Positions 9,042-45,086 are shown, counted from the stretch's first letter. The stretch is 64,000 nt of DNA from Rebecca billardiae RCC1528 (GCA_965240325.2 OZ251246.1:372001-436000); one strand, 5' to 3'. Notes: generated by a model not told the origin, from the letters alone. Numbers and translations are program-made.

Positions 9042-11969
9042 CATAGGGGGGCCAAACCGCTCATTTATAATAAAAAAGAAAATCAAAGCCGCGGCGCATT
9101 TTCGCTCCTCCCTCGGCCTTTTAGGGTGGCGCGGAGCCTTTTTCTCGGACCCCGCTCGAAAATCGAGCTCCGACGCGTTCGGCGCTCAGAGAGTCAGAGC
9201 AAGGGGGTTCAGTCAACTCAGAGCTCGGTTCCGCTCGAGCACGAGCGGCCGGAGGCAGTGGACCGCCGCGCGCTCGCGTCCCATGATACGCCGAGATGGT
9301 CTCGGGAGCGCGCGCGCGTGACCCTGGTGGGCGCTTCTGACCCTTGTCTTTGCGCCACCAGCGGCTCACCACCCGGTTCTTGGCCACCTCGCGCCGTGCG
9401 CGGCGCGCGTCGGCCGGCTTGAATTGCTGCGCTGCGTACGCCCGACACGCTACCCCTCCTTGTGGCTCAAGATCAACTCGCCCCGGCGAGATCGATGCTC
9501 GCCCCAAGTGTTCATGTGTATCCGTGGATGCCCAGCTCGCCTAACCTGCCCTGCTGCGACGGAATCGCCGTCAGCAGACCGGCGCGAGCTCGCGCGCAAC
9601 ACCTCCGCGGAGCCCGCAACTGTCATGTTCCGCTCGTAGGGCCCGTGTTTGCACCTGCCGTGGCACTTGCGATGGTCAGCACGTTGGGTATGGGTCACGC
9701 GTGCCCCCAGATGGCGTCGGGGCGCCTCCCACTCGCCTCTCAGGACGTCGCGGACGTGCTCGCAGGCAGCGGATGGCTCATTCGACAGGTCCGACGTGCA
9801 CTCGACCGTGCCTACAAGCGCGCCCCTGTGACGCGCATGCCTACAGAAACAGACGCAGATGGGCCTCAATACACCGTGGTGCGCCCAAGACCGGCGGGAG
9901 CGTCAGAGACCGTCTCAATCTTGACACCTTGCACACGCCGGCGCTTGCCATTGGGCTCCGCGCAGCCAGACAGGAGCGCCGAACAGCGCCGGATCAGCCT
10001 CTGTAGGCCGAATATCCGCCCCAACGCCCAGGAATAGCGCGGAACAGGGTACGGCGTACATATATGGACCGATCCCATCCGGCCTGGTTTGGTGCAGAGA
10101 CGCCAGCCACCACCTGGAGCAGGCGTTTGCTGCCGAATCGCATGCTCGGCACTGTGCCGCACTGCGACGACGACAGATTTGACCTGCCTCGTAGGTCTCG
10201 GCCATGGAGCGGTGACGGTTGGCTCAAGTGACTTTAAACCTTGATTATGACCGAGAGTACTCCCGGGCTGAGGACATGGGGCCGGTGCTTTGGGTCTACT
10301 ATGTCTGCAATACGCCGTACGCATGGCCGTATACACAGTCTGAAAACGTATCTCGCGGCTAGAGATCAGACGAGACTGTATTCATCAGCATGGCGTCTAT
10401 ATACACGGTGGGTATGTAACGACCAGTGGCTTCCGGGAAACTACGTGTTTGACAGCCTGCCAGTACACAGCCTATATCGCATGTTGGGACCTGCTGCTGC
10501 TGGGGACTCAGAACGACCTCGCCGAGATGCTCTATCAAAGTGAAGTCGACATGGTCTATGGGTCGATTTATTTGGCCATCTCGCGCGCCGCCACGCCCCT
10601 CTCCGCGTCTGCCGCGCGCACACGCAGCGATTGCATTTGGATGTTGCATTCTTGCGCATGCTTGCGCGCCACGTTGCGGGACGAGAAAAAGCGTCATGCG
10701 GTTAGGTTTGGCAGTTTGAGATGGTTCAGATGATGTTGTGACAGGAACTGGAAGACCTAACCGCATGACGCCCTTCATGCGCGCGCTACACGCATCACGT
10801 GCTCTCCGCGCAGGTGAGCTTGAAAATTTGAAGCTGCTGCTCCTCTGCGAGGCCATCGAGGCGAGCGGCGGCTAGCATGATGCAGCGCTCTCCCCAGCTG
10901 CCACGGCCAGCCACCTGCACCCGGCTGTGCTCGCACTCGCCTTGAGTGTGTGCACGGTTGACACGTCGACGGTGCTTGGCGGTGTGTTTTTGACTGCTGG
11001 TTGGTACGCACGCATCATGGGCCCACAGTGGAGTTGGGGTGCGTGCCGTGGCTGTGGCGCGCACGCGATCGACCCATACTACACACGCACAGCGCAGCTC
11101 GGCATCGTTACGGGCTTCAAACGTCGGCCAGAGCTTGTTTGCTATCCGCGTGCTGCGATCGTCGGCTCCGAGCAATCCACGAGGATGACAACAGGCGGTG
11201 CGTGCGCTGTTTGAAGGCGTTGGGCGCGGCGTCTGCTGGCTGTGCAGTCGCGCCTGGGTACGGCTCGCATGCTACGCAGCGGCGGATACCAGTCTGATGC
11301 GGTTTGACGCACGGGCAGTCATCTGCTTTGCTCTGCACGCGTGGCCGGCTGATCATCCTTTCGCAACGCGTGTCTGCGCGTGCGGTGACTGCTCCCAGAT
11401 GGGCTCGACGCGAGGCAAACGCGTGCGAGACTCATCGATACGGAGCTCCCCTCCAGGCAAGCGAGCGTTTGAGCGCGCTCACCTCACTCATGCCTACCCA
11501 CGCGCATGTTTGCGCGGCCCACTGGTTCGAATGATGCGACGAGGTCGGTGCGGCGTGCTCGTGGGCAGGAGTGCGCGCTCAGTCGACGGTCAAGACGCGC
11601 GCCACGAGGAGCAGTCATGTGCCCAAGGTCGCTCGACCAGCGCGCGACCAACGGCACCCGCGTAGGGCAGCGCAGGAGCTCGCGTTTGACACAGTGGAGC
11701 GCCACTGGGGCGGACGGGCGCCATGGGCGCCCATCGGCGCTACCAGCCCTCCCGTCGTCATGCGGTCATCCCGTGCGCCGAAGCCAAAAAAATCGATTCA
11801 GGGTATGTGCACCTGATTTTTTTAATTGGCTGGCCCAGACCCCTCCAGAGGGCATATGTCTGATATCATATGATCCAGCCCCAATTCAGCGCTAATAAAC
11901 ACTCGCTAGGACCAGCGCTCGTAGCCGTCAGTCACGTCACAGACACAGTGCCACTTTGGCACTCATAAA
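9042..11969. mobile_element. Non-autonomous TIR DNA transposon family A, copy 1 (P- or hAT-like termini)
   Basis: Begins CATAGGGGGGCCAAA and ends in degenerate TTTGGCACTCATAA. Highly similar to 41457-43171, which ends TTTGGCCCCCCTATG. No intact transposase ORF. Confidence 0.75.
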
Positions 11970-12168: not shown

Positions 12169-13365
12169 TCAATCATCGGAGGATGATGACAGATCGGATG
12201 CCAGGATCACTGTCCAACGGTCAGACTCGTCATCAACGTAGTCTGTGTCTGCACCGTGTGGCCGCAGTCGTGAATCCGCTCCGAGGTTGCCTCCGCTCTC
12301 GAGTCTCCCGACCAGCGGCGGCGGTTGGGGCAGCTGTGGGGCGGCGTCCGAGTCAGTGGCGATGCTGCTGGTGCGTGTGTGCTGTCGCTTCGCTGAGCGC
12401 GTGCCCTGGTCGCCGGTGCCATGCTCCAGCCTACGCTTGGAGACGGCGAGCCGAGTGTTCACCATGCCGGCCAGCTTGTGCGTAGCGCACCGGCTGAAGC
12501 GCGCGTCGCCCGGCATGCCGAACGAAGGCAGCTTGGTGCAGCCCGCGTGATCGCACATGGGGTTCCTCACATTGACCATGCCGGCCAGCTTGTGCACAGC
12601 GCACCGGCTGGCGCGCGCGTCGCCCGGCATGCCGAACGAAGGCACCTTGGTGCAGCCCGCGTGATCACACATGGGGCTCACCACATTGACCATGCCGGCC
12701 AGCTTGTGCTCAGCGCACCGGCTGGCGCGCGTGTCGCCCGGCATGCCGCATGACGGCTGTTTTGTGCAGCCGGCATGACCGCACTTGCGGTTCACCACAT
12801 CGACCATGCCGGCCAGCTTGTGCGTAGCGCACCGGCTGGCGCGCTTGTCGCCCGGCATGCCGAACGAAGGCTGCTTGGTGCAGCCCGCGTGATCGCACAT
12901 GGGGTTCCTCACATTGACCATGCCGGCCAGCTTGTGCTCAGCGCACCGGCTGACGCGCTTGTCGCCCGGCATGCCGCATGAAGGCCACTTGGTGCAGCCC
13001 GCGTGATCGCACATGGGGTTCCTCACATTGACCATGCCAGCCAGCTTGTGCTCAGCGCACCGGCTGCCGCGCGTGTCGCCCGGCATGCGAAATGAAGGCC
13101 ACTTGGTGCAGCCCGCGTGATCGCACTTGGGGTTCACCACATTGACCATGCGGGCCAGCTTGTGCTCAGCGCACCGGCTGCCGCGCGTGTCGCCCGGCAT
13201 GCCGAATGAAGGCCACTTGGTGCAGCCCGCGTGATCGCACTTGGGGTTCATCACATTGACCATGCCGGCCAGCTTGTGCTCAGTGCACCGGCTCGGGCGC
13301 GTGTCGCCCGGCATGCCGAATGACGGCTGTTTTGTGCAGCCGTCATGACCGCACTTGCGGCTCAT
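12169..13365 (-). CDS. EsV-1-7-like cysteine-rich zinc-repeat protein 1 (8 x 38-aa repeats + NLS-like and acidic tail)
   Basis: Tandem 114-bp units encoding CxHAGCTKxPSFGMPGDxRxSRCAxHKLAGMV(N/D)V, matching the EsV-1-7 C-x4-C...C-x2-H motif. ATG at 13365 (MSRKCGH). Confidence 0.8.
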   Translation of the reverse strand: MSRKCGHDGCTKQPSFGMPGDTRPSRCTEHKLAGMVNVMNPKCDHAGCTKWPSFGMPGDTRGSRCAEHKLARMVNVVNPKCDHAGCTKWPSFRMPGDTRGSRCAEHKLAGMVNVRNPMCDHAGCTKWPSCGMPGDKRVSRCAEHKLAGMVNVRNPMCDHAGCTKQPSFGMPGDKRASRCATHKLAGMVDVVNRKCGHAGCTKQPSCGMPGDTRASRCAEHKLAGMVNVVSPMCDHAGCTKVPSFGMPGDARASRCAVHKLAGMVNVRNPMCDHAGCTKLPSFGMPGDARFSRCATHKLAGMVNTRLAVSKRRLEHGTGDQGTRSAKRQHTRTSSIATDSDAAPQLPQPPPLVGRLESGGNLGADSRLRPHGADTDYVDDESDRWTVILASDLSSSSDD

Positions 13366-15484
13366 CGAGTAGCTCGTGCTTGAGCGTCCGTGTACCCTCG
13401 GCTCGGTGGCTCCGGCCCGGGCGGCAGCAGGGACTCGCGCTGTACTGTACGGTGTGCCACCCCGCGGCCCGCCCTCCCGCTCGGTTGTTGTGTGTCCGAT
13501 CCGGATCGGGGGGATAGTCCGGTAGACACCCCAGGAGTCCGGATGGGTGCGATCGACAGCGGACAGCACCGCGCTGCGACGCGCGAGCTGTAAGGCCGCC
13601 GCCCGCCGCCATGGACCTCAGCTTCATGGACCAGCCCTTCCCGTTCGGCGCACGTGACGAGGATGCTGAGGCGCGCGATGGGGGCCTCGACATGCTCGGA
13701 GGCGATTTGAGTTACCTGGTCCACCCCGGATTTTCGCCAGTGAAAAAGCCTTTTTCGGATTTTGGGCGCCTCATTTCTCCCGATTTTTCTGCTCGTAAAA
13801 AATCGCCACCGGCCGTCCGACGGGCGACGGCTCGCCGCGACGAAGGTCGGGAAGGGGCTCGAGAGCCTCGACTGGACGACTGCGCCGCCTCATGTCAGGT
13901 GTAGTGCTGGACACATCGTTCGGGTGCCCCGGCGGTGTGCGTGCACACCTTGAGCGACATGTCTGCGTTGCTTCCGCCGCCCGCGGTCCGTCGCCAGGTC
14001 GAGTTCTCGCCCGACGGCGCGCGTCGAACGCTCAGCTGCTGGGTTCCGCCGCGCCTTCGAGACGGGCCACCTCGGGTAATATGCGGGCCACGCGACGGCT
14101 CGTGTGGGCCACCGCCTTCCCCTAGCATGTATTCGATGCCACCACCAGCGTTGGGCGCGCTGCGCATCGCCAACGCTTCATCCGGCCAGTCCCGTCACGT
14201 TCGAGCATGGGTCGTCCTGAGCGGCGGCTGTCGATTTGTGCTCCTCGTGGAGCTGTATGACGGGCTGGTGGCGAGCAGGATGGCTCGCCTTGCGGGGCTG
14301 GGTGTGTGCAGTCGCAGTGTAGTGGCTGCCGGCTGACTCCCATCGCCTGGGTGCTGCTTTACCGTCATGGCCTTTGCTGCGAGCACAAGGTCGAGGATCG
14401 TACCGCGGTCTGCGAGGCAGAAGAGTCGACGGAGTCGTCGCTTGAAGATGGTTGAGAGCGCTCATACGTCTTCCTTGGTGTCGTGCGGCTACTCCAGCGC
14501 GCAAGGCTCGCGCTCTGGCACGTGTTTGGTGTCCATGGGTGGCACATTGTGCCATTCGGGTGGCTCGGAAGCACGTGCTCGGGTGTCTTTCCCGTTTACG
14601 CGCGGTGGGCCAAGTCACCACGCACGGCCAGAGCATGTCATGTCACGCAGAGGGTGACCATGAACGATCCCCACCCCGGTGGTGGCCGTAGGCGCACTCG
14701 AAGCGGTCGCATCGTCACCCGCGGATCACATCAGTCCGCCGTTGAGGCTGTCGGGCGAGCAAAGACGTGTGATCTGACCCTTGGACGGGCAGCTAGAACC
14801 GCGATTATGCCTCATCTGAGGACGCACATGTCGTCGCTGTAGGCAGTACTGATGCCCCAAGTGAAAGGGCGGGCGTGGCACGCGACTTGACAGCTTGAAT
14901 GACTCGATGCACGCCGCCATGGACACGCGATCCGGATCCGTTGCGAACCTGCCGTGTGGCTCACGGCGGCGCGCGTTGTGCCGCAGATCGGCCAGTCGCC
15001 ACGCAGGAGATGGTCTCCAGACCAGGTCCAGCACCTGACCGACTGCCGCACGCCTGGCCGGGTGGGAGTCCGGCCCTCTTCTTGTCTGCAGGAGTGCGCG
15101 GAAGGCCAGGCGGAGCCTCGTCCGACCGCTGCACCCAGAGCGCCGCACTAATCCGTAATCGTGCAGCCTGGGACAGCTACCCACCTGTGGCGAATATGTA
15201 ACGGCATGGTGGCATTGTAACTGTACAGGTCCAGACCGCATATTTATGCGGGTACATTGTCCATAATATGCGGGCACAAGTGGGTAATATAGTCGATCTT
15301 GCCGCTGCAGTAGTATTGAGTACGGCCACTTGCTGCACAGACCACAGCCCATCCTAATGGCCTGTACCAAGGTTCATGCTCGGCATTGCTCGCCTCGACG
15401 TACGCCAATAAGTAGGTTCGTGCGTTTGGGCTCATTTCGGCTAAGTACTTACCCATATCATTCAGACTGACGATTCTCTATGTG

Positions 15485-15982
15485 TCCGGCTCGGGCTCCG
15501 GTCCACCACCCCCAGCTCCGTTACGTCTTGGCCCCGCCGCCGAAGTCAACCAAGCGGACCATGCAGCAGAGTCCCTTCCGACCCCCGGGCCCGATTGATG
15601 ACTTCAACGAGAACTGATGTCGCAGATCCGACCACCTCCCAATAGGTTTAGACTCTATTTTACTATGTCATTACCCGTCCCTTACTCAGATTTCAGCACA
15701 GTCCGGGATTCGTTCCGAACACCTGTATACATTTGCGAAAGTGTCACCCGGATTGGGTATTTGATTATAGAAAATAGAGTCTGAACCCATTGGAGGTCGG
15801 GCTGATGATCCACTGTCGTCTGGCCGTAATCGGTAATATCGGACATCCAAGGGACCGCTTGGGGTGGTCTAGGAGCTAAGCTAGTGTAGATCATCAGAGG
15901 CAGCGATCCCGCCGATTGCAGTGTCAAGATGTAACGCTCCAGTGACCGGACTGGGGGGGCGGGTGGACCGAAGCCGGAGCCG
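15485..15982. mobile_element. Degenerate MITE-like element with imperfect ~40-bp TIRs
   Basis: CGGCTCGGGCTCCGGTCCACCACCCCCAG at the left end vs the reverse complement of CTGGGGGGCGGGTGGACCGAAGCCGGAGCCG at the right end; AT-richer non-coding interior. Confidence 0.4.
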
Positions 15983-16235
15983 TCCGTGACCGTAGCAGTT
16001 CGGTCCTCGGCGCGCGCACGGCACGCTCAGCACGACGTCGACGACGGGCCGCGGACGATGCGATTTTCAAAGGCCGAAGTTACTTTTATTGCTCCGCCCG
16101 GGCTGATGGGCCCATATCATTTGTTACTTATATATTATACGCTGTTTCCGGGTGTGAGCGCGTGCCTAGGGGCCCGCATTCATTTTGCGATAAAATCCCC
16201 GAAAGTGCTCCAGTGCGTTTGGACCAGGCTCAATA

Positions 16236-17610
16236 TCAATCGTCATCGGAGGATGACAGATCGGATGCCAGGATCACCGTCCAACGGTCAGACTCGTCAT
16301 CAATGTAGTCTGTATCAGCACCGTGTGGCTGCGTTCGAGAATCCGCTCCGAGGTTGCCTCCGCTCTCGAGTCTCCCGACCAGCGGCGGCGGTTGGGGCAG
16401 CTGTGGGGCGGTGTCCGAGTCAGTGGCGATGCGGCTGGTGCGTGCGTGCCGTCGCTTCGCTGCGCGCGTGCCCTGGTCGCCGGTGCCATGCTCCAGCCTG
16501 CGCTTGGGGACGGCGAGCCGAGGGTTCACCATTCCTGTCAGCTTGTGCTCAGCGCACCGGCTGGCGCGCGCGTCGCCCGGCATGCCAAACGAAGGCTGCT
16601 TGGTGCAGCCAGCGTGACCGCACTTGGGGCTCACCACGTCGACCATGCCGGCCAGCTTGTGCGTAGCGCACCGGCTGGCGCGCGCGTCGCCCGGCATGCC
16701 AAACACAGGCCGCTTGGTGCAGCCGGTGTGATCACACTTGCGGTTCCTAACGTCGACCATGCCGGCCAGCTTGTGCGTAGCGCACCGGCTGGCGCGCGCA
16801 TCACCCGGCATGCCAAACGAAGGCACCTTGGTGCAGCCCGCGTGATCACACCTGGGGTGTATCACGTCGACCATGCCGGCCAGCTTGTGCGTAGCGCACC
16901 GGCTGGCGCGCTTGTCGCCCGGCATGCCGAACGAAGGCAGCTTGGTGCAGCCGGTGTGATCACACTTGGGGCTCACCACGATGATGAACATGCCGGCCAG
17001 CTTGTGCGTAGCGCACCGGCTGGCGCGCGCATCACCCTGCATGCCGAACGAAGGCACCTTGGTGCAGCCCGCGTGATCACACCTGGGGTGTATCACGTCG
17101 ACCATGCCGGCCAGCTTGTGCGTAGCGCACCGGCTGGCGCGCTTGTCGCCCGGCATGCCGAACGAAGGCACCTTGGTGCAGCCCGCGTGATCACACATGG
17201 GGTGCATCACGTCGACCATGCCGGCCAGCTTGTGCGTAGCGCACCGGCTGGCGCGCGCGTCGCCCGGCATGCCAAACACAGGCCGCTTGGTGCAGCCCGC
17301 GTGATCACACTTGCGGCTCCTGACATCGATCATGCCGGCCAGCTTGTGCGTAGCGCACCGGCTGGCGCGCTTCTCGCCCGGCATGCCGAACACAGGCTCC
17401 TTTGTGCAGCCCGCGTGATCACACTTGCGGCTCCTCACGTTGACCATGCCGGCCAGCTTGTGCGTAGCGCACCGGCTGGCGCGCTTGTCGCCCGGCATGC
17501 CGAACGAAGGCAGCTTGGCGCAGCCGGTGTGATCACACTTGGGGCTCACCACATTGACCATGCGGGCCAGCTTGTGCTCAGCGCACCGGCTGCCGCGCGT
17601 GTCGCCCGGC
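16236..17610 (-). CDS. EsV-1-7-like zinc-repeat protein 2 (9 full repeats + 5' half repeat; 5'-truncated, in-frame ATG at 17561)
   Basis: Same 114-bp repeat and a nearly identical C-terminal tail to gene 1. Repeat homology stops abruptly mid-repeat at 17610; the frame stays open. Confidence 0.75.
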
Positions 17611-20610
17611 AGCGTTCCGCACACGTGCGTCCGCCCGGCCCGCGCCGGCAGCGGTGCCTCCACCGGATCCACACCAGCGTGATTATGTATGCGGGCCCGG
17701 AGGGCCCGTGTACCAAACCCGCGAGCGCGAATCACGATGGCGGCGCATACTGGTCCAAGGAGTTTGTCCGGAAATCGGCTGGCCTCGTTAGTTACAACTT
17801 CGACTTCTACTAGAAAAATGTCTACTTTCAGATACACGATTCGAATTATTCTTATTGGGCGCAAACGAAAACGATTGCCGGATTTGGGGGGCGAACCGGA
17901 CTCAACCGGCCTACGGTGAACCGCCAACCGTGATTTAGGTGGGTCCCTGGCGATTTTCCAGCGGTCTTTTAAACATTTACCGGGTTTTCTGGCCTGATTT
18001 CTTTTCGCGCGGGGCGCGGCTCGGGAAAATCGCCGGACCGCCGGCCGAGGTCGATCTGAACGCTCCCGACGATGTCGGAGCGCCTCTCCAGCGCGACCGA
18101 GCCGCCGTGTGTCGGGTAGCCCACAGCCAACACCTATCGCGCGCTCCAGCGCTTTGCGCGTGCTCACGGATGGGATCCGTGGTCACACATCCCCCGCCTG
18201 GCACGTGCCCGCATGTTTGACTCTCGCCCGGCTAGACGCGTACAGACAACTTGAATCGATCGGCGGGTGTTCGACCCGTGCCTTCGAGCAGGGTCAGTTT
18301 TTGCCACATGCGGGTCAGGCGACGGGAGGCATGGGTCAGTGTCGTGCACGGGCATGCTCTTGACGCTCCCGCCATCTTGAGCAGCTCAACGCACCGTGAA
18401 GGTGACATTTGGGCTGTGCGCAAGCTGCTCGTGAGAACGCACGACAGCCAGCCCCGGGCTCTCGGGGAGCCATGTAAGCGATTGGCGACTTCCGAGAGGG
18501 CGTGTTTGGTGGGGGTTGGTACCAATCATCGACCAGCAGGCCTAGGATGGGTGCACTGAGGACTTGGGATGCTGAGAAGCCGCCGCGATGTGCGGCGAGC
18601 ACGCCGACTTGCCATCCGTGTGCACGATCCAGCGCCAGGAAGATCAGCAGGGCCTTTGACAGCGGCAGCAGGCGCTCAGCGATCCTTCCCTATGCCGAGT
18701 GTGGGCATAGCCTGTGGTGCTCGAGGGTGGTCGCAGGATATGGGTCCATTCTTGACAGAACGCGGTCGCGTTGACAGGCGCGGGTGCCACCCCACGCTGT
18801 TGCTTCTGCCATTGGGTGGTCCCACTCGTTCCGCTTGTGGTCTGCGAAGACTCGTACTCAGCAACTCTACGGCTAGGCGTAGTAGACCCCTCAGACGCAT
18901 GTCTGATGATCGCCCGGCACGTTCTCGTCGTCACGTTGGGTGTACTTGAGCGAGCGGAAGCCGCAACGTGATGGCTAGGCCAGCAGCTCAACCATCTGAC
19001 GTCTCGCCGGCCAACTGGCTGAGTGCTCTCAGCCTAGCAGCAGCGTCGGTGAACCTATCGTATTGCTGCCTGGCGAGAAGATGGTAGGAGGCATCGTCGG
19101 CGGCATGGGCTGCAGCTGCGGTAGTCATGGACTGGTGGCGGCCTCACGCGGGTGGGCATACGACGACCGGTGACACGCGGAGTACGAGCACGGAAGCCGC
19201 CGAACGCGGCAAGCTCCGGCGGTGGCGTTGGCTGATAGTCCAGCCTCGACGGCGGAGGGCTCCCGTGTGACGACGGTGGCATGCTCGGTGGCGGGCGATG
19301 GTGTGTGCCTCGGCACGCAGCCCGCCACAAACACTGCCACTCGCAGGCAGTCCGGTTGCGGCCCGGGTTGCCAATGCCTGTGTCCGCGTCGCTCGGCGCC
19401 TATTCGATGACCCAACAAACGTACCCACATATCGGAACGAATTTGAATATATAGTGAAGCGCATCCACGGTCAATATAAAGTGGGTACCATACATACTAT
19501 ATACGGGTAAGTGGCTATATATGAAGTGGGTAATATGCTCGATCTTGCTGTAGTTTGTTGGAGGTATCAGCGCACAGCATAGAGCCCCACTCTTTGCTTC
19601 ATAAAATGGTTCGGTCGGGTGTCAACGGTTGTCAATAAGTAATTCCGATCGCATGTCGCCATCTAGCCACCATAACCATGAAGTGACGCTTCGCAAAATC
19701 TCTATGTGACACTACTGGCGCGGCGCGCGCGCGCTCGGCCGCGCGACGGCACGCGGAGTAGGTTTTGAGGTCGAAACTTTTGCTCCGCCCCGATGGGACG
19801 CATTTATGGCGTCGATTCTGGGTGAGAGACAAAATCTAGGACGTCATCCTGAGTGCGCCAGAATATCGCCCCAGTGGGGAGGGACCCACCTACCGGGGTG
19901 ATTCGTGAACTCGGTGAAGTCGCCAGCCTTGAGATGGCACCGCAGACCGCATTACGCGATTAATTCGAAGAGGCACCTGGAAGAGAAGCAATAAAATGCA
20001 TAGCTCGCGGCGGCCCTCCCGCTCGGCAGCTCTTTGTTTGAGAGCTGTTCATGAGTCGTGTCGCGAACGCGTCTGGAGCTTATTGCTCGCACGGGCCGCC
20101 GAGGGCTCCGCCGTGAGGCGCGCCACCCGGGCTGCTGTCTGTGCCTGTGGCCACGATGCCCGTCGGGGGGAGGCGCGTCCGCGGCGCAGTGCATGAGGCC
20201 GTCGCGCGCTTCTTGCCTCGCGCCAAGCTCTGATTGCGTCTCTCGCCCGCCGAGCTCGCCGCTAGCCGGCCGATGTCGTCACGATCCGCGGCATCAAACC
20301 AATCACCGCACACAGACCGCCAAGCCCGAAGCCGCGCGGTGACACAGTAAGTACGTGCGGAGTGAGCACAGAGCAGGCGCCTGAGCGCGACACGCGCGAA
20401 AGATGGTGCGGTCACGCCCCTGCACGACTGGTCGACCGCTTACTTGCCCGCTCGGCGCGTCTCAAGAACCCCTCGTGCGCGCGTTTCACGCGGCGGAGTG
20501 CAACGAACGAACAATCACGGACCTGCGGTCGCGAACGACGAGGCACAGTGCTCGAGCTGCGCGATAACACAGCGCGTGTGCACACTGTGACTGAGTGAGC
20601 AGACGCCTGA

Positions 20611-31135: not shown

Positions 31136-31188
<53 letters not shown>

Positions 31189-31220
31189 CACACACACACA
31201 CACACATGTGTGTGTGTGTG
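31136..31220. repeat. (CA)n microsatellite abutting an inverted (TG)n
   Basis: About 35 CA units followed directly by about 7 TG units. Confidence 0.95.
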
Positions 31221-41659: not shown

Positions 41660-43198
41660 GACGCCGAGATGGTCTCGGGTGCGCGCGCGCGTGACGCTGG
41701 TGGGCGCTACTGACCCGTGCCTTTGCGCCACCAGCGGCTCACCACCCGCTTCTTGGCCACCTCGCGCCGTGCGCGGCGCGCGTCGGCCGGCTTGAATTGG
41801 TGCGCTGCGTACGCCCGCTACGCTACCGCACGGTGTGGCGCATGATCAACTCGGACCAATGAGATCGATGCTCGGACCAATCGTCCATGTATGTCTGTGA
41901 ATGCCCAGCTCGCCTAACCTGCCCTACTGCGCCGGAATCGCCGTCAGCAGACCGGCGCGAGCTCGCGCACAGCACCTCCGCGGAGCTCGCAACTGTCATG
42001 TTCCGCTTGTAGGGCCCGTGTTTGCACCTGCCGTGGCACTTGCGATGGTCAGTACGTTGGGTATGGGTCACGTGTGCCCTCTGATGGCGTCTGGGCGCCT
42101 CCCATTCGCCTCTCAGGACGTCGCGGACGTGCTCGCAGGCAGCGGTTGGCTCATTCGACAGGTCCGACGTGCACTCGACCGTGCCTGCAAGCGCGCCCCT
42201 GTGACGCTCATGCCTGCAGAAGCAGATGCAGATGGGCCCTCATGCACCCTGGTGCGCCCAAGACCGGCGGGAGCGTCAGAGACCGTCTCAATCTTGACAC
42301 CTTGCACACGCCGGCGCTTGCCGTTGGGCTCCGCGCAGCCGGCCAGGAGCGCCGAACAACGCCGGATCAGCCTCTGTAGGCCGAATATCCGCCCCTAAGC
42401 CCAGAAATAGCGCGGAACAGGGTAGTGCGTACCTATGTGGACCAATCCCATCCAGCCTGGTTTGGTGCAGACACGCCAGCCACCGCCTGGAGCAGACGTT
42501 TGCTGCCGAATCGCATGCTCGGCACTGTGCCGCACTGCGACGACGACAGATTTGACCTGCCTCGTAGGTCTCGGCCAGGGAGCGGTGACGGTTGGCTCGA
42601 GTGACTTTAAACCGTGACTATGACCGAGAGCACTCCCGGGCTGAGGACGTGGGGCCGGTGCTTTGGGTCTAATATGTCTGCAATACGCCGTACGCGTGGC
42701 CGTATACACAGTCTGAAAACGTATCTCGCAGCTCGAGATCAGATGAGGCTGTATTCATCAGCATGGCGCCTATATACACAGTGGGTATGTAACGATCGGT
42801 GGCTTCTAGGAAACTACATATTTGACAGCCTGCCAGTACACAGCCTATATCGCATGTTGGGACCTGCTGCTGCTGGGGACTCAGAACGATCTCGCTGAGA
42901 TGCTCTAACAAAGTGAGGTCGACATGGTCTATATGTCACATATAGGACGACCGTTACATGTCGTTTCCAATAAGTTCAGGCTCATTCTAATAAGTAAATA
43001 TGCTAGCCGTTACGCCCTATATTCAGGGTATGTGCACCTGATTTTTTTACATGGCCGGCCCAGACCCCTCCAGAGGGCAAATGATCCAGCCCGAAATCAG
43101 CTCTAAACACTCGCTAGGACCCGCGCTCGTGGCCGTCAGTAACGCTACAGTGCCACTTTGGCCCCCCTATGACCGCTGCCACGATTGCCCAACGAAGC

Positions 43199-44986: not shown

Positions 44987-45086
<100 letters not shown>

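Follow-up and report, generated by a model that had tools for sequence, protein, structure and literature searches.

Hypervariable column in the EsV-1-7 repeat arrays of two Rebecca billardiae genes and its possible relation to nucleic-acid targeting

In the arrays of C2H2 zinc fingers found in PRDM9 and the KRAB zinc finger proteins (KZFPs), the tandem units undergo concerted evolution, with positive selection at the contact residues. The EsV-1-7 domain is another tandem Cys/His module; it defines a gene family that ranks among the most expanded ones in brown algae, and it is found in the developmental regulator IMMEDIATE UPRIGHT (IMM) and in giant viruses. It is described, in PMC12477816 and in Macaisne et al. 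2017 as conveyed by the papers citing the latter, as a possible novel zinc finger of unknown function that has multiplied in brown algae and has a likely viral connection. Here, we describe two genes, genes 1 and 2, which encode EsV-1-7 arrays and lie on a stretch of 64,000 nucleotides from the alga Rebecca billardiae RCC1528 (GCA_965240325.2, OZ251246.1:372001-436000; the whole stretch is referred to as the window hereafter). An original prediction, made from the sequence of this stretch, had singled them out as repeat proteins with a hypervariable residue. This residue, the one following GC(T/A)K (column 9 of the repeat unit), was found to be hypervariable throughout the family, and the arrays may function in nucleic-acid targeting.

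The two genes are organized as follows, with positions counted from the first nucleotide of the window.

12169..13365, minus strand: gene 1 coding sequence, 398 amino acids (aa), eight EsV-1-7 units and a tail, from the list of open reading frames (ORFs), with PF19114 in 8 stretches
12454..13353, minus strand: gene 1 array, 8 units of 114 bp
13327-29, 13213-15, 13099-101, 12985-87, 12871-73, 12757-59, 12643-45, 12529-31, minus strand: gene 1 column-9 codons, reading Q W W W Q Q V L
12172..12453, minus strand: gene 1 tail, 94 aa
16236..17561, minus strand: gene 2 coding sequence, 441 aa, nine units and a tail, from the earliest in-frame ATG to TGA
17538..17612, minus strand: gene 2 half unit, LPGDTRGSRCAEHKLARMVNVVSPK
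16521..17537, minus strand: gene 2 array, nine full units
17511-13, 17397-99, 17283-85, 17169-71, 17055-57, 16938-40, 16824-26, 16710-12, 16596-98, minus strand: gene 2 column-9 codons, reading L E R V V L V R Q
16239..16520, minus strand: gene 2 tail, 94 aa

Tandem Repeats Finder (TRF) reported arrays with a 114-bp period at 12461-13366 (7.9 copies, 90% matches) and 16528-17611 (9.5 copies, 87%). A six-frame scan of the window with a hidden Markov model of the unit gave eight units in gene 1, and nine units and one half unit in gene 2, in agreement with the 8 and 9.5 repeats originally predicted; no further EsV-1-7 units were found in the window outside these genes. A higher-order period of 459 bp in gene 2 was rejected, since it scores no better than the 114-bp period. 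The Pfam family PF19114 (EsV_1_7_cys; gathering cut-off, 25 bits) was matched by gene 1 with 392.4 bits (E = 2.5e-120, 8 stretches) and by gene 2 with 446.6 bits (E = 2.8e-137, 10 stretches). The unit is 38 aa long and has the pattern C-x4-C-x16-C-x2-H, in which C1, C6, C23, and H26 do not vary, either across the 17 full units or across 548 units of the family. This motif, the period of about 38 aa, the tandem units, and the clustering of the genes in tandem are those of the EsV-1-7/IMM family of algae and giant viruses. All the sequence hallmarks of the family were thus found in genes 1 and 2, and the earlier assignment to it is borne out. The pattern of Cys and His ligands suggests that the units bind zinc.

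The window genes also differ from the rest of the family. Their units are more alike (78% mean aa identity, as compared with a family median of 49%), they carry an orphan tail of 94 aa, and their host is a GC-rich alga, not a brown alga. Because they lack the N-terminal domain that precedes the five repeats of IMM, with gene 1 beginning 4 residues ahead of unit 1 and gene 2 inside a unit, they are not IMM orthologues. Between units, the mean nucleotide identity is 85%, and the proportion of synonymous differences (pS) is 0.20; the scaffold is therefore not almost invariant at the DNA level, contrary to the original prediction. One gene 2 unit (16965-17081) has 39 aa through a 3-bp insertion, while the others have 38 aa; it carries an odd MFIIVV linker in place of MVDVV and is the least typical unit of both arrays. 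The W-W-W units of gene 1 are 94-95% identical and are a recent triplication, and columns 25 and 33 divide the units by descent into two subtypes. The arrays grow and change by unit duplication and conversion. In this sense, the predicted reshuffling is supported; otherwise it is not, as the units cluster mostly by gene.

A clear contrast is seen between column 9 and the scaffold. Column 9 has the highest entropy of all columns (2.47 bits; six residues across the 17 units), and the linker columns 35-38 come next (1.6-2.1 bits). The strings originally read there, Q-W-W-W-Q-Q-V-L and L-E-R-V-V-L-V-R-Q with the codons CAG/TGG/GTG/CTG/GAG/CGG, and the linker alternatives (V/M/R/I)(N/S/H)(P/R)(K/M/R), were recovered as written. 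Besides column 9, some of columns 11, 18, 20, 24/25, and 35-38 vary; about nine columns vary per unit, one of them dominant and about eight minor. Nei-Gojobori comparison of the window units gave a ratio of nonsynonymous to synonymous differences (pN/pS) of 0.22 for the 29 scaffold columns, and the zinc scaffold is under purifying selection. The pN of column 9, in contrast, is 0.565 against the array-wide pS of 0.20, and columns 35-38 have a pN/pS of about 3. When changes were counted by parsimony on a unit tree built without column 9, 12 nonsynonymous steps were found in this column versus 3.1 expected at the synonymous rate (Poisson p = 9e-5), and the fastest synonymous site had 4 steps. Units 4 and 6 of gene 2 are 97% identical, yet they differ at column 9.

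The same column stands out elsewhere in the family, for which it was set as the prior hypothesis before the independent arrays were tested. Across the 548 units, taken from 120 relatives, within-protein entropy peaks at column 9, which is also conspicuous in independently homogenised arrays. In five other arrays with available DNA (L001-L005), nonsynonymous changes are most numerous at this column, which also shows the top omega-like value (1.7; Fisher p = 0.025). A set of 16 non-redundant arrays from giant viruses, in which the ranking is the part to be trusted, again puts it first (1.54, pooled p = 2e-5), and columns 24, 11, and 25 follow. Because the same column is the fastest in independent arrays, the hypervariability of column 9 is real and is a property of the family, not a peculiarity of this locus. 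Column 9 shows an excess of nonsynonymous change both in the window units and in independent arrays, and the predicted conserved scaffold with a hypervariable residue holds.

Family-wide, the residues at column 9 rank Q > R > H/T/S, and D or E is found in 3 of the 548 units. The original prediction had also stated that E or R at column 9 always pairs with PVF. This is true of the window (3 of 3 units), but there is no positive association across the family, where V11 occurs in 4 of 130 units with a charged column 9 and in 33 of 418 others. Since, in addition, two of the three window cases are duplicates with 95% identity, the pairing was rejected as a rule and is taken to reflect ancestry.

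The relatives of the arrays offer a clue to what the units may do. The nearest ones have 40-57% identity and are mostly unnamed metagenomic or viral proteins, together with brown-algal and green-algal proteins. Several of the closest share the unusual 'SRC' signature of the window units (Arg at column 22) and end in a domain of about 190 aa. This C-terminal domain is conserved in 88 of the 120 nearest array hits and comprises 3032 representative clusters; its motifs are RRPD..ExDE.QH..RFNPD, of which PD..ExDE..H and RFNPD are invariant (alignment A2). The instance analysed was P0012:240-441, and the viral loci fetched were L006-L085. Neither Pfam nor PHROG gave a match to the domain above threshold, and one of the four members scanned with NCBIfam gave a sub-threshold match to Hjc (13 bits against a cut-off of 70). 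Its AlphaFold2 (AF2) model is confident, with a mean predicted local distance difference test score (pLDDT) of 88 and a predicted template modelling score (pTM) of 0.85. With this model, Foldseek retrieved Hjc, R2 RLE, Bax1, McrC, and restriction enzymes (best E 1e-3, probability 0.99), and VIA retrieved a DUF559-like endonuclease (Z 7.9, rmsd 2.7, 92/94 residues), BpuSI (7.2), I-Bth0305I (6.7), and Vsr (6.4), and further the FASTKD4 FAST-RAP module (Z 6.4) and Toxoplasma mitoribosomal proteins (Z 7.2 and 4.8). The two lists agree in consisting almost solely of restriction-endonuclease-fold proteins, and by its best matches the domain is probably a nuclease-like one of the Vsr/PD-(D/E)xK type.

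In IMG/VR, at least 563 loci with this domain were found, many of them in GVMAG giant-virus bins. A search of the same database with gene 1 gave no close relatives. Among the 80 fetched IMG/VR loci, 64 have 1-9 EsV-1-7 units just upstream of the domain in the same ORF. Of the members without such units, at least 4 have C2H2 fingers in the array position (one with six or more), and others have different Cys/His-rich segments there, with 20-27% Cys+His. One metagenomic relative (P0001) combines ten EsV-1-7 units with a Tudor domain of the PTM/DIR17 type (34.6 bits; cut-off, 27.2), a combination that hints at chromatin association. In Ectocarpus, moreover, a Tc1/mariner transposase has gained an N-terminal EsV-1-7 domain (PMC12477816). 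Among the nuclease-fused relatives, the one closest to the window arrays is encoded on a densely packed 15-kb contig of a JGI metagenome (L001; 66% GC). Its gene adjoins a gene for the ribonucleotide reductase small subunit; the contig has the GC content of the alga and may derive from a virus of a GC-rich host. In the literature searched, no paper was found on the hypervariable column, on the nuclease fusion, or on an EsV-1-7 expansion outside brown algae and their relatives.

The nuclease-like domain is not present in genes 1 and 2, and their tails are unrelated to it. The two tails are identical at 85 of 94 aa and differ at 20 of 282 nucleotides (pS 0.106, pN 0.058, ratio 0.55). Each has a basic first third with KRR-x13-KR, then a Pro stretch (PQLPQPPP), and then an acidic and aromatic end, DTDY(V/I)DDESDRWTVILASDLSS, which is DTDYVDDESDRWTVILASDLSSSSDD in gene 1; the shared tail was thus described correctly in the original prediction. 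The RR-x13-KR spacing is slightly longer than that of a classical bipartite nuclear localization signal (NLS). No match to the tail was found in Pfam, among the 120 array hits, or in a word-indexed search of a protein collection limited to the tail. The end may be an activation domain. It may also be read as an Atg8-interaction (LIR-like) motif, in which an acidic run is followed by W-x-x-I (ESDRWTVI), or as a SUMO-interaction (SIM-like) motif, in which VIL is followed by a Ser/Asp run.

Two well-known modular systems resemble the window genes in different respects. Like the C2H2 arrays of PRDM9 and KZFPs, the window arrays consist of tandem zinc modules that are homogenised within genes and show a nonsynonymous excess at a few fixed positions, and the number and order of units differ between paralogues. 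Furthermore, C2H2 arrays stand before the same nuclease-like domain in some EsV-1-7 relatives. The window units, however, have a spacing other than C-x2-4-C-x12-H-x3-5-H, no Pfam C2H2 match, and no predicted helix in place of the beta-beta-alpha fold. With the TAL effectors (TALEs) of Xanthomonas, the window genes share nearly identical repeats in tandem, a hypervariable site within these, and a basic segment and an acidic end after the array. Nevertheless, no relation in sequence or fold and no TAL Pfam match was found: TALE repeats are metal-free helical hairpins of 33-35 aa with two adjacent variable residues (12/13), whereas the window units are 38-aa Cys3His modules, and a TALE is a secreted bacterial effector, whereas these are host nuclear genes. 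The resemblance of the tail to the TALE NLS and acidic activation domain is at the motif level (RR-x13-KR and the acidic aromatic end). The AF2 model of the array (pLDDT 85, pTM 0.47) contains short strands and no helices according to DSSP. With 38-aa Cys/His units, no helices, and about nine variable columns, the original suggestion of likeness to TALEs in fold or in a code of one repeat for one base does not stand, and the window arrays seem to evolve like those of PRDM9 and KZFPs rather than like TALEs. A third likeness is one of architecture: the R2 protein (zinc finger/Myb and RLE), I-Bth0305I, and type IIG/IIS restriction enzymes would share with the viral relatives the combination of a targeting module and a PD-(D/E)xK domain, but the window genes are without the latter.

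We consider nucleic-acid targeting to be the best reading of the window arrays and hold it with moderate confidence. It is favoured because of the fusions to the nuclease-like domain, the C2H2 fingers that take the place of the array, the transposase, the basic charge of the arrays (isoelectric point 9.4-9.6, about +3 per unit), and a column 9 that is almost never acidic. As the arrays occupy the position of C2H2 arrays before the nuclease fold, they behave as a target-recognition module would. The nucleic-acid recognition array of the original prediction thus gains indirect support. The code attached to it, the NLS function and activation domain proposed for the tail, and the antiviral or anti-TE role do not. 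In the proposed mechanism, the units would bind zinc, and each would give a few contacts to nucleic acid, more likely DNA than RNA, made by position 9 together with adjacent positions near the zinc. Columns 9/11 and 24/25 are presumed to flank ligands of one and the same zinc and would therefore lie close together. The string of units would set the target specificity, evolving in the manner of PRDM9/KRAB C2H2 arrays. The window proteins would have swapped the nuclease for the short basic-then-acidic tail, and this tail would recruit partners in the nucleus.

Several observations weigh against this reading. The window genes are without the nuclease, so the argument from fusion is one of analogy, and the nuclease-like domain has structural matches of moderate strength (Z < 8, Foldseek E about 1e-3). 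The array model has no solved match (Foldseek against PDB, best E 0.9; wide VIA search, Z 2.1), and PDB sequences searched with a profile of the array likewise gave none. Column 9 of the window is mostly hydrophobic (W, V, L), unlike the Q/R of the family. The 5' end that the ancestral copy had is missing from gene 2. Parsimony takes no account of conversion between units and its step counts are approximate, and in the viral arrays the synonymous sites have reached saturation. Finally, IMM, the sole characterised member, is without known biochemical activity according to the papers that cite Macaisne et al. 2017.

Three other explanations were weighed against nucleic-acid targeting. The arrays may be protein-binding or scaffolding zinc modules, adaptors resembling LIM or PHD domains that act, for instance, in developmental signalling as for IMM, and position 9 would then be the most exposed residue, diversifying against protein partners. 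Hydrophobic residues at column 9 of the window suit protein contacts, the LIR-like and SIM-like motifs of the tail are typical of protein-protein hubs, and the biochemical role of IMM is unknown; LIM and PHD tandems are also among the weak Foldseek rows for the array, but these rows are far from significance (E > 0.9). Such a role leaves unexplained that the nuclease-type domain, which bears C2H2 fingers in some other members, has the arrays as its predominant N-terminal partner, and also the acquisition by a transposase, the basic charge, and the near absence of D/E at column 9. We regard it as rather unlikely. Quite improbable, in our judgement, is that the arrays read RNA instead of DNA, with the fused domain as an RNA-processing module resembling RAP; in FASTK or OPR/HPR proteins, a PD-(D/E)xK-fold domain is directed to transcripts by repeat arrays. 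The VIA matches to FASTKD4 and the Toxoplasma mitoribosomal proteins point in this direction, and the W, V, and L at column 9 could stack on bases. However, the top structural matches are DNA enzymes (DUF559/Vsr, BpuSI, I-Bth0305I, Hjc, R2 RLE), the alternative N-terminal partners are C2H2 fingers, and the transposase bearing an EsV-1-7 domain acts on DNA.

The last explanation, which seems very improbable to us, is that one or both loci are non-functional relics, gene 2 being a 5'-truncated pseudogene, and that the variation arose from relaxed constraint or at a mutational hot spot. Gene 2 is in fact without the first 1.5 units and the start codon of gene 1. Its likeness to gene 1 sets in at 17612, within a unit, and its half unit corresponds to the 3' half of unit 2 in gene 1, with which it shares 'LARM', a string that no other unit has. 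Because the homology stops at the half unit, gene 2 is a 5'-truncated copy, which may or may not be expressed. The frame upstream of the half unit, up to 18167, has no ATG, no EsV-1-7 match, and no likeness to gene 1. The 3-bp insertion with its MFIIVV linker and the tail ratio of 0.55, a value from just 20 differences, can be added on the same side. Both frames are nevertheless open across 1.2-1.3 kb, the scaffold pN/pS is low, and the two loci are homologous in the coding sequence alone, up to a single base beyond the stop codons. As for a hot spot, CGG can turn into TGG or CAG at column 9 by CpG transition, but the consensus has 14 CpGs per unit, of which most units have kept the majority, and column 9 is the fastest also in AT-rich viral arrays without CpG codons; decay or a hot spot at CpG was accordingly rejected as the cause of the column-9 variation.

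The two genes lie in the minus-strand open frames 12169-13569 and 16236-18167 of the ORF list. The earliest in-frame ATG of gene 1 (13363-13365) is four codons ahead of unit 1, and the stop is TGA at 12169-12171. Directly upstream of this ATG, 13366-13368 reads as a Ser codon; the protein queries for gene 1 spanned 12169-13368 and contained this one extra codon. The ATG of gene 2 (17559-17561) is the Met of the half unit. The window is eukaryotic DNA with 60-78% GC, and the neighbouring genes encode a GT47 exostosin, RCC1, Arf, a short-chain dehydrogenase (SDR), and an ARM-BTB protein, together with a Copia element. Since the GC content (0.66-0.67) and the GC content at third codon positions (GC3; 0.81-0.82) of both genes equal those of the surroundings, they are read as resident host genes, paralogues within the EsV-1-7/IMM family. 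A fresh viral insert was rejected on these values, the host-gene neighbours, and the lack of viral markers in the window.

Some other elements of the window were recorded. Long ORFs run antisense to the arrays (16323-17813, plus strand, 496 aa; 12421-12753, plus strand, 110 aa) and have no family match; they were rejected as genes and are read as by-products of GC-rich, stop-poor repeats. A dispersed repeat is found just downstream of gene 1 and again just past the Copia element (9504-10559 and 41877-42932; 93.5% identity over 1057 bp), with a second piece of 82% identity (11796-11936 and 43021-43144), and it is probably a transposon family. Long pure microsatellites occur at 31136-31206, (AC)35, and 44989-45083, (AT)47.

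Judged from their sequences, genes 1 and 2 are new members of a known family, and the position-specific selection signal is reproducible. The homogeneous window arrays, in which nearly all differences between units fall at a few columns, and their nuclease-fused viral relatives form a natural test set for unit binding. A bolder proposal, to which we give little weight, is that EsV-1-7 units are an undescribed class of modular sequence-specific readers whose specificity comes from positions 9, 11, 24/25, and 35/36. It would then be possible to decode natural arrays and to change the order of their units, as with C2H2 fingers and TALEs; giant viruses would use them to aim a nuclease, and in the alga they would have been domesticated into a large family that acts in nuclear regulation or as sensors for defence. 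If sequence-specific binding is true, the EsV-1-7 unit would be a new modular recognition scaffold and would provide a handle on virus-host gene exchange in marine algae.

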